Below, piece after piece: positions 36,801 to 39,800 of a DNA stretch of 64,000 bases (its first letter is position 1; each line of letters opens with the position of its first letter). The notes below the pieces were generated by a model, which was not told the origin of the DNA, searched no databases, and saw only the letters and a list, made by a program, of their open reading frames with translations. Origin of the DNA: Oculina patagonica (lineage: Eukaryota); the NCBI RefSeq assembly GCF_052425735.1, contig NC_135763.1:1860001-1924000 (forward strand), given 5' to 3'. The position numbers and the translations under genes were made by a program.

Positions 36801-39800
36801 ATAACACAATGTTAAAATCGTTTTCACAGCTAGCCATCTATTATTTTCAGATGAGCATCCAGTTTTAAACGATTTAGTGTGTGGCAGAATTGCCCAGAAC
36901 TGTGACACATTTTGTGTTACTAATCAATCAATAAAAAAATATGACTCAGTCACATTAACAATGCTAACAAACCGACTGATCATGACAACTAGATTTGCCT
37001 TTGCATGGTAATGATCTATCGCAGATTTTGAAGCAATGAACATTTCGCCTTGAGCTTATACAGCTCTTTCACTTGCTTTTAAGCTATGAAGGGGAGTACA
37101 TCTGATGATCCAAAGAAAAACTTAGGACATCCAAGGTTTTAAATCTATTAATAATAATATTAACATAAGTTTAATTTTTTTATATAAAAGGTTTATACCT
37201 AAAACAAGGATTCTGTGAGTGGGGCCACTTCAGGTTCTGTAGTGCATTTCACAAGGGCTTTCCATTTCCAACTTTGGTATCAGTGGAATGAAAAATCTTC
37301 TATATATTTTTGACCACTTGAATGTATTCGGTATATTAAATTAGTTTGTACTTAAAGTATGTGAAAGTGAGACTTCACAGTGACAAGGTTCGTGTTTCAA
37401 AACTGTTTTGGCCACACAGCCTTTGGTAGCTTTAATTAATGTATTAAATGAGAAACAGTCACGAGACACGACCTAACCTGCATTTCATCACATTCATCAG
37501 GGCGGTCTTTGTGGACAGTCATTTGATATTTTGCATAGAGAGCACATGTCTGTTTGTATGTTGCTTTAAATTCTTCAGACTTCAAGTCCACTCTCACTAT
37601 TTTGACCTAGGAATTTAAACAACTAAGGGTGAAAATTCAGCTCGCAAAATAATGAGAACTGAAAGTTATTTCTTGCTTGTTCAATTGGTAAGGAAGTGAA
37701 CCCTACAGGTTTTAAAATGAATACACCTTTGAGCTTTTATTGGCTTAAAGATCCCCCGAAAATACACTGCACATATTCGAAGGCAACAGTTGTAGTGACG
37801 ATTTTACAATCTAATATTGAAGATGCCAATATCTTGCAATGCACTTGATGGAACAGAAGTGGCCCCCTCCCCACCTTGAACTTGTTACTAATGTTATAAT
37901 ACCCTTTTCTCAGTGCATTTTTCAGGGGGGTCTTTATGGATAGCTCTTTGGTATTTAAAGAACAGCGCTGCAGTCTGTGGGAAGGTTTGCATAAATTCCT
38001 CATTGTTTGGGTCTGATGGAATCAGCTTGATCTAGAATTGAAGCACATACATGTTTGTATCATTTATAAGCTGTGCAAATTTTTCGATCTTTACCAACTC
38101 GATTCTATGGATATTCCAATGAACTACAACTATAAAGCTTAATGGCACAATATATAGACATGAAATTAAACATTGCTCTGATCAACATAATTACTGGTAA
38201 CTTATACATGCGTGTTTGAGTAATGTATTCATTTAGTGAAATCACGCGGCAACTTGCCTAGTAAGACCACAACTACAATCTAAAAATGTAGTCGAATAGT
38301 CCATAGCAAATGATGCATCCAATAAAACTTCAGGTGGGTCTTAAAACTCAATGAGTCCAGGAGCAAAACATCTGCCTTTATTTTGACTGTACCATTGGCA
38401 CTTGGACAATTCATTTTGTCACCACTGTGGGGGCATTTCCCACCCCCACCCCATTTGGGTATGTTCAGGGGATGGCCCAGGGAAAAGGTACTGGAGAAAT
38501 AGACAACTACGATTTGTTCGAATCATAGCATAGGTCTGGAGTAATTTGTACGGGGTGGAATCTTTACCTGGAGATCGTGAGCAGGTGATTGGCTAGGTAG
38601 TCTATCAATCACAAAGTCTTCCAATGATTTCGTGATGGGGGCTTTGGACGTTTGGGAACTTGATTCTGAATCTGCCAACTAATGAATGTAAAAAACCCAA
38701 AACAATTAAATAACCTGAACATCATTTAGGTGTACACCATATTAAAATTGTGGCAAAAATGGGTTATCCATTGTTATTGCTGTTAATAACACATAGTTTG
38801 TACCCTTACTCTCTCTGCTTCAAAATGTCGGAGAAATGGACCGGACTCTGGTATTTGGTAATCAAAAATTCATGACTACATGGAGATACATTTTTAACAG
38901 TCATTCTACCGGTATTTTGGTTTGCAAGCATTAATTAAAAACTTTAAACAGATGTTTCAAAATAACCCAACTATTACATCAAAATTATGTGATTAATAGG
39001 CAGGAAGTCATACATTTATGATGTAGGGTAAATTTCTCTTAAGAATTTCAAGGTGGGATTTACATACATGCATGCTTTCCTGTGCCACAAGATTTTTTAA
39101 GATAACAAGGTTAATAATTACTGTATTATTGGCTAGGCTCCAAGGTACGTAATGCACATTGAGGGGTATGTTGTCGTGGCCCTACATGCATTTTGGGCCG
39201 ATTGAACTCTCAAATTATTGGCTGGTCTCAAAGTGATAGGCATGTAATACATTTATTTAAAGCAGTCAGGATGTGTAGGTTTGCCCCATGTGTGTAGAAG
39301 GCTACTTGGGTTGTATAAGGTAGCAGCTCTTGCAAGAGAACAAAAGCTTATGAAAGCTGTGGCACTACTGTGCTTTACCGTACCCAAATTCGCAAGTAGC
39401 CAATCAGAAGCGCGATCTACTGTCCTGATATCCTACGATATCAAGTCACTGACCTGATATGCCCCATATCACGGTCACTTTGAAGTAAAGTAGTGTTACT
39501 GTACGATGAATTGAAAAGAGGTTTACCAATAAAACAGAACTTCGTAACTTAATTTAAGCGATGTTTAGCGGTCGTAAAAAGAGAAAAACTTTCCCGCCAA
39601 AACTAAACTTGAGCGCGCTCGCCAATTGCGCGATGTTTGCAGATGAGTACTGAGACATTCCGACTGAAAAATGGAGTCGGTATTTCCAAATTTTTCGCTT
39701 AATTTTGATTTTGAAAATTTAGAGAATGAAACTCTAAACAAACGAGTGAAAAAAAGGCAGAAGAAGAACTTGGTAAAAGTGTTGAAGACCTAGTCAACAC

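Follow-up and report, generated by a model that had tools for sequence, protein, structure and literature searches.

The stretch analysed here, 64,000 nt of Oculina patagonica contig NC_135763.1 (positions 1,860,001 to 1,924,000; hereafter the window), contains the ATE1 gene, which encodes arginyl-tRNA--protein transferase, on its minus strand, and every exon read from the window agrees with NCBI XP_078372427.1 (P0042), the ATE1-like isoform X1 of this coral. Two of the exons, here called A and B, are homologous and lie in tandem; their 43-residue segments are 46% identical. We focus on two complementary stretches, one in the intron between A and B (5′ arm) and one in the intron between B and the constitutive exon C (3′ arm), for which an earlier note, made from the letters of the window, had proposed a role as an RNA-structure splicing switch. 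The coordinates of exons, introns and arms are collected in Table 1.

The donor of exon A is weak, with no G at +5. It reads AGG/GTATTA in Oculina (37895-37905; the slash marks the splice site) and GTATTA, GTATTG or GTAATC in every coral examined, G at +5 being absent throughout. For the exon B donor (37470-37480), we found CAG/GTTAGG or CAG/GTTAGA in most scleractinians, CAG/GTCAGA in Montipora and CAG/GTTGGC in the cnidarian contig L011. In this contig and in a further one, L004, exon B measures 123 or 126 nt.

Exons A and B are used singly. The RefSeq isoform X1 of Oculina (P0042) contains exon B without A, isoform X2 (P0208) exon A without B, and both A-only and B-only forms are present in the NCBI isoform sets of Oculina, Acropora, Montipora, Stylophora, Pocillopora and Porites. 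Among 13 de novo coral transcript proteins, four were A-only and nine B-only; none carried both exons and none carried neither. These proteins come from short assembled contigs (1.75-3.4 kb), a length from which we take them to be transcripts and not genes. As the lengths of both exons are multiples of three, double inclusion and double skipping would stay in frame, and exclusivity therefore cannot rest on nonsense-mediated decay. Steric exclusion of the OGDH type, in which the branch point is distant and close to the upstream donor, was also considered and rejected, because the AG-exclusion zone is absent: the A-B intron holds between 12 and 89 AG dinucleotides, and the nearest upstream AG lies 14-32 nt before the exon B acceptor at 11 of 11 loci. 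Moreover, the length of this intron far exceeds the steric minimum.

Table 1. Coordinates of the ATE1 exons, introns and complementary arms within the window
Feature	Position	Strand	Remarks
Alternative exon A	37903..38031	-	129 nt, phase 0, 43 aa; resembles vertebrate exon 7a
Exon A splice sites	acceptor AG 38033-38032; donor GT 37902-37901	-	from the sequence
Intron A-B	37607..37902	-	296 nt; 5′ arm at +28 to +85
5′ arm (intron A-B)	37818..37875	-	RNAduplex; core in the earlier note 37834-37873; conserved coral motif CACTTCTGTTCC
Alternative exon B	37478..37606	-	129 nt, phase 0, 43 aa; resembles vertebrate exon 7b; enclosed by the predicted duplex
Exon B donor GT	37477-37476	-	from the sequence
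Intron B-C	36697..37477	-	781 nt; 3′ arm at +216 to +264
3′ arm (intron B-C)	37214..37262	-	RNAduplex; core GAAGTGGCCCC
Constitutive exon C	36664..36696	-	codes for 11 residues; tblastn and protein P0042; joins whichever alternative exon is used

The predicted intronic duplex in Oculina

The earlier note had described a perfect 11-bp core (37221-37231 with 37856-37866), an 8-bp helix (37241-37248 with 37838-37845) and flanking helices of 3-4 bp in register. We recovered the core in a repeat search of the window, and RNAduplex, applied to the two arms, returned all of these elements as one structure of 3+11+4+8+3 = 29 bp with an energy of -42.6 kcal/mol. Wider flanks lengthened the duplex to 37875-37818 with 37262-37214 (-51.4 kcal/mol), arms that lie on either side of exon B, which the pairing thus encloses as had been claimed. 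Their placement relative to the splice sites agreed as well, with the 5′ arm starting 29 nt past the A donor and the 3′ arm 223 nt past the B donor. When the 721-nt stretch from 37910 to 37190 was folded, the minimum free energy and the centroid structures were both closed by the arm helix.

Running RNAduplex on whole introns gave long, meaningless global duplexes (z = -0.45); seeded duplexes of 44-nt windows were used instead. In the comparison with shuffled sequences that the earlier note had suggested, the best intron-intron duplex had -42.6 kcal/mol vs a mean of -24.5 kcal/mol (sd 2.9, z = -6.1) for 200 dinucleotide shuffles of both introns; no shuffle went beyond -35.7 kcal/mol.

With up to three mismatches allowed, each arm occurs once in the 64-kb window, which speaks against their membership in a dispersed repeat family. 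An origin as the inverted repeat of a miniature inverted-repeat transposable element was likewise rejected, given that the arms are single-copy, bound a coding exon and occupy orthologous places in other genera. A search against Rfam yielded no family match, the lone hit being SCARNA7 with 16 bits vs a gathering score of 65 (E = 0.36). Elsewhere in the window, very strong inverted repeats occur within 1.2-kb spans at about 3300-4700, 14500-17100, 48300-50200 and 60700-62100, with energies of -52 to -73 kcal/mol. They are probably transposon-derived, and they account for the high background against which long-range complementarity in this one genome has to be judged.

Recurrence and covariation of the arms among corals

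Orthologous ATE1 loci were gathered by protein look-ups and one DNA-pattern scan. They comprise a Montipora contig (L003), Pocillopora verrucosa (L006), Stylophora pistillata (L007), Porites harrisoni (L005), Porites lutea (L013), two Tara Pacific Porites contigs (L001 and L002), three robust corals with about 84% exon identity to Oculina (L009, L010 and L012), the cnidarian contigs L004 and L011, and Nematostella vectensis (L008). Exons A, B and C follow in the same order at all loci but that of Nematostella, which has a single exon and no pair.

Nine of the other loci, seven of them scleractinian, keep both arms, and in eight of these nine the homologous arm pair was the best duplex between the A-B and B-C introns. 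Its energy, compared with that of the runner-up, was -41.8 vs -29.6 kcal/mol in Pocillopora, -36.3 vs -22.6 in Stylophora, -46.8 vs -20.6 in L010, -40.7 vs -21.3 in L012, -37.6 vs -23.1 in L009, -34.5 vs -27.3 in Montipora and -36.5 vs -31.1 in L011. For Porites, the 5′ arm of a Tara contig paired with a site at +1056 in the B-C intron of P. harrisoni (-36.4 kcal/mol, the arms thus coming from two contigs). At the ninth locus, L004, the arm pair came second (-33.4 vs -34.1 kcal/mol) and was still the best partner for the 5′ arm. The shuffle z-scores ranged from -5.1 to -8.5 in the robust corals and amounted to -3.3 in L011.

Conservation of the arms in orthologous introns, on which the earlier note had made its proposal depend, was found in Pocillopora, Stylophora, Montipora, the Tara Porites and the robust corals L009, L010 and L012. 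Between genera, the introns cannot be aligned except for the splice-site margins and the 5′ arm, which constitutes the sole clear intronic island shared with the other coral genera. Within the Oculina clade (four members), invariant columns make up 33% of intron A-B and 30% of intron B-C, whereas invariance rises to 0.85-0.95 in the 5′ arm and 0.80 in the 3′ arm core; each is the peak of its intron, the margin of the exon C acceptor aside.

Three further elements were noticed in the same introns. A second island, CAGTGTATTTTC(A/G)GGG at 37753-37772 (+131 to +150 of the A-B intron), is invariant in the four Oculina-clade corals; it has no consistent pairing partner, its best duplexes (-16 to -28 kcal/mol) lying at differing places. 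Another candidate island, GGGGGATCTTT, is present in Oculina, Pocillopora and Porites; it was judged a chance match, as the closest relatives L009, L010 and L012 lack it. Additionally, a local hairpin adjoins the exon B donor (37386-37474). The 26 nt that include its 5′ half are present in Oculina and absent from the same three relatives, and the hairpin is thus not conserved among them.

The position of the 5′ arm is tied to the A donor. The C of a conserved CTTC within it falls at +46 to +65 from this donor in 8 of 8 scleractinians, over a range of A-B intron lengths from 206 nt (250 nt in a second count) to 1472 nt, while the 3′ arm lies anywhere from +145 to +1056 after the B donor. This geometry bears on the possibility that the arms favour circularisation of exon B by back-splicing, with the skipping of exon B in the linear transcript as a by-product. 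Complementary stretches of 30-40 nt suffice for circularisation in animal genes, and sequences that drive it resemble the coral arrangement in having complementary boxes, here of about 40-58 nt, in the two introns that flank a single exon, the Oculina boxes standing about 230 nt before the acceptor of exon B and about 220 nt after its donor. However, a single-exon circle of 129 nt would be unusually small, the distance between 3′ arm and exon B varies 7-fold, and the 5′ box keeps its place relative to the donor of the upstream exon instead of the acceptor of the enclosed one. We therefore link the role of the 5′ arm to the A donor and regard circularisation as unlikely.

In the more distant contigs, paired stretches were seen at L004:5702-5727 with 6615-6640 and at L011:1465-1499 with 2734-2768, in the same layout as in corals and with the arm 18-52 nt past the A donor. 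Their arm motif, ATGGGCTGTTTTCA, is unlike the scleractinian one, and the differences between L004 and L011 are all compatible with G-U pairing. Exon D of these two contigs is roughly as distant from that of Oculina as is exon D of Nematostella.

The arms also covary. The core helix pairs GGCCAC with GTGGCC in the Oculina clade, GGTCAC with GTGACC in Pocilloporidae and GGACAC with GT(T)GTCC in Porites, so that corresponding positions are C-G, U-A and A-U, respectively (in Porites, a one-nucleotide bulge shifts the register). Other columns alternate between G-C and U-A or between A-U and G-C, and in the distal helix AGTGC with GCACT of Oculina is replaced by AGCAC with GTGCT in L010 and L012. 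RNAalifold, applied to six robust corals, placed 21 consensus pairs with 91% canonical cells, compared with 40-52% when the 3′ partner was slid by 1-3 columns. Six of these pairs were altered on both sides, and together with the matched, clade-specific changes they contradict the idea that the arms do not covary. Exchanging the arms among species led to the same result: cognate arms had a mean of -42.7 kcal/mol, arms from different clades a mean of -25.6 kcal/mol, with clear clade blocks, which at the level of predicted pairing confirms their co-evolution. As judged from these comparisons, compensating mutations have preserved the pairing in at least five coral lineages, and it is present in both major branches of stony corals, the Robusta (Oculina, Pocillopora and Stylophora) and the Complexa (Montipora and Porites), whose split is ancient according to coral phylogeny.

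Porites offers cases in which the structure was lost. Relative to the Tara Pacific contigs, both of which keep the 5′ arm, an 89-nt deletion removes this arm in P. harrisoni and P. lutea. The 3′ arm is retained in P. harrisoni and gone in P. lutea, where it was removed by a separate deletion of about 45 nt. The stretches compared for the two losses are L005:9852-9910, L013:8961-9020 and L013:11320-11370, against L001:980-1070. Such a stepwise loss, first of one arm and then of its partner, is in keeping with two arms that belong to a single device. Both species are natural knock-outs, in which the predicted effect on the isoform ratio is testable with existing sequencing data.

A further explanation of the 5′ island is that it acts as an intronic splicing enhancer, bound by protein, of the weak A donor and that the complementarity has no function. 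Its fixed distance from the A donor, initial G-runs, a pyrimidine-rich motif and the adjoining donor without G at +5 all suit such an element. It would leave unexplained why the downstream box is a conservation peak, too, why substitutions in the two arms are matched, why cognate arms pair better by about 17 kcal/mol than clade-swapped ones and why Porites lutea has lost both arms; we hence rate an enhancer of this kind as very unlikely.

Proposed loop-out of exon B and competing explanations

Taken together, we think it likely, with some reservation, that the arms form a selectively maintained intramolecular duplex in the ATE1 pre-mRNA, which functions as a ratio-setting loop-out module similar to the pairing of boxes R2 and R5 in human ATE1. 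The duplex would close a loop of about 600 nt that contains exon B with its acceptor and donor and would thus take this exon out of the linear path, at the same time moving the weak donor of exon A, which precedes the 5′ arm by about 30 nt, nearer to the exon C acceptor. Where the duplex has formed, A should be spliced to C and exon B skipped, giving the A isoform; where it has not, exon B with its stronger donor should win. The module would set the A:B ratio and would not by itself enforce mutual exclusivity. Formation of the duplex in vivo and the direction of its effect on splicing are what we infer here. The observation itself is real, and the interpretation is supported in that it came through the computational attempts at refuting it, on purely comparative evidence.

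Several points weigh against this interpretation. Within the window, 11 of 168 placements with the same geometry (6.5%) reach -42.6 kcal/mol or better, some of them -52 to -73 kcal/mol; the signal from the single genome is therefore modest (about p = 0.065), and the case rests on the comparison with other species. Among these, the arm pairs of Montipora (z = -1.8) and L004 (z = -1.4) are not outliers vs shuffles by energy alone; the weaker z-scores, including that of L011, were obtained where introns are long. Most of the both-sided changes fall on one branch, that between the Oculina clade and Pocilloporidae, so that the number of independent events is small. Duplex energies of the sense and antisense strands show no consistent asymmetry, and the G-U pairs are thus no proof of selection on the transcribed strand. 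With respect to the products, forms with both exons exist for Acropora, Montipora, Porites and Oculina, among NCBI gene models only (P0044, P0045, P0162, P0164, P0168, P0202, P0203, P0207 and P0213, from Montipora, Acropora, Porites lutea and Oculina, the last being KAL9968644 with 555 aa); these tandem models may be annotation artefacts or represent rare double inclusion. Finally, A-only, B-only and A+B products are annotated even in P. lutea and P. harrisoni, which lack the intact structure; either isoform can thus be produced without the duplex.

The control placements, along with the many equal or stronger inverted repeats in the window, could also be read as a sign that the arms are a neutral inverted repeat, a chance product or transposon remnant with no role in splicing. 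We consider this extremely unlikely, since the arms are single-copy in the window and flank a coding exon, have homologous placement in lineages whose introns are otherwise unalignable, and covary.

More elaborate than a loop-out module would be a full two-way switch of the docking-site and selector type, in which one of the arms pairs alternatively with a site upstream of exon A, so that exon A is looped out by one pairing and exon B by the other and exclusivity is enforced. Human ATE1 does possess a competing module, R1/R3/R4, and the strongest pairing of the upstream intron with intron A-B hits the 5′ arm region in Oculina (-32.1 kcal/mol) and Pocillopora (-29.4 kcal/mol). But the upstream partners differ in position and are unrelated in sequence, L009 has no such duplex, in Stylophora, Montipora and Porites it does not rank first, and the energies lie in or near the shuffle range of the A-B vs B-C comparison (mean about -24, best about -32 to -36 kcal/mol). 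In addition, the upstream intron is without a conserved island between genera. When it was compared with the A-B and B-C introns of seven species, duplexes of -18 to -39.6 kcal/mol were obtained, none of which recurs at homologous positions; an assignment to the docking-site and selector class was rejected because no conserved second partner was found in these seven species. A two-way switch thus appears improbable. Of the splicing switch suggested in the earlier note, the part that stands is the conserved, covarying pairing around exon B. A single conserved pairing, for which no conserved competitor was found, makes the coral element look more like the ratio-setting R2-R5 pair than like a two-way switch.

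Relation to known structures and to the history of the exon pair

In human ATE1, exons 7a and 7b flank box R2, whose pairing partner R5 follows further downstream, past 7b; disruption of either box abolishes 7a and raises 7b, with no double inclusion, and compensatory mutations restore the pattern, as mutagenesis and antisense oligonucleotides demonstrated (Kalinina et al. 2020, NAR; PMC7797038). The parallels with the coral locus are close. It is the same gene with the same pair of homologous 129-nt exons, used singly, and with one box between the exons that is complementary to another beyond the second, the exon that would be looped out. Of the properties expected of an R2-R5-type module, three were found: one-at-a-time exon use in RefSeq isoforms and de novo transcripts, the two-box layout in Oculina and nine further loci, and the conservation of both boxes along with compensatory substitutions. 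There are also differences. The human pairing spans about 30 kb, that of corals about 0.6-2 kb; the competing R1/R3/R4 module of human ATE1 has no conserved counterpart that we could find in corals; and R2-R5 is experimentally proven, whereas the coral structure is predicted from sequence comparison. As a compact 0.6-kb version of a 30-kb human structure, the Oculina element is convenient for minigenes.

Control of tandem alternative exons by long-range RNA structures has been documented in bilaterians, mainly insects and mammals. Dscam1 exon 6, 14-3-3zeta and the R1/R3/R4 module of ATE1 share with the coral locus a conserved intronic pairing with compensatory changes close to alternative tandem exons, and there, as predicted for the corals, the pairing determines which exon the spliceosome is offered, but docking-site and selector systems need one site with at least two mutually exclusive partners, and one conserved partner pair was found in corals. 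A full-text literature search found no description of an RNA structure at a cnidarian alternative exon pair. The predicted coral duplex is a new, phylogenetically distant addition to a known kind of regulatory RNA structure, and it would imply that selection acts in reef corals on the very gene, exon pair and loop-out layout known from humans.

A homologue of exon 7b was said to be absent from invertebrates (PMC7797038). The coral loci and many invertebrate gene models (P0004-P0021), which hold both ATE1 exon copies in tandem, contradict this statement. The tandem pair has been recorded by another group in octopus, Drosophila, C. elegans and spiders; none of these records mentions cnidarians. 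In a maximum-likelihood tree of the 43-residue exons, the group that held coral exon A also took in vertebrate 7a, the invertebrate first copies and the one exon of Nematostella (support 92/88). Coral exon B, vertebrate 7b and most invertebrate second copies fell outside this first-copy group and formed no single supported clade. With its 43 columns, the tree weakly favours one old exon duplication over separate ones. A pair of the 7a/7b type, together with a duplex that loops out the second copy, might even predate the split of cnidarians and bilaterians, the present structures being either descendants of an original one or its continuously replaced successors. We regard such an age as rather doubtful; if true, the pairing would be among the oldest RNA structures known to control splicing in animals.

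In another intron of the gene outside the A-B-C region, a long G/C-rich low-complexity tract extends over 41340-41610, which would be read as poly-Gly/Arg on one strand and as poly-Pro/Ser on the other.

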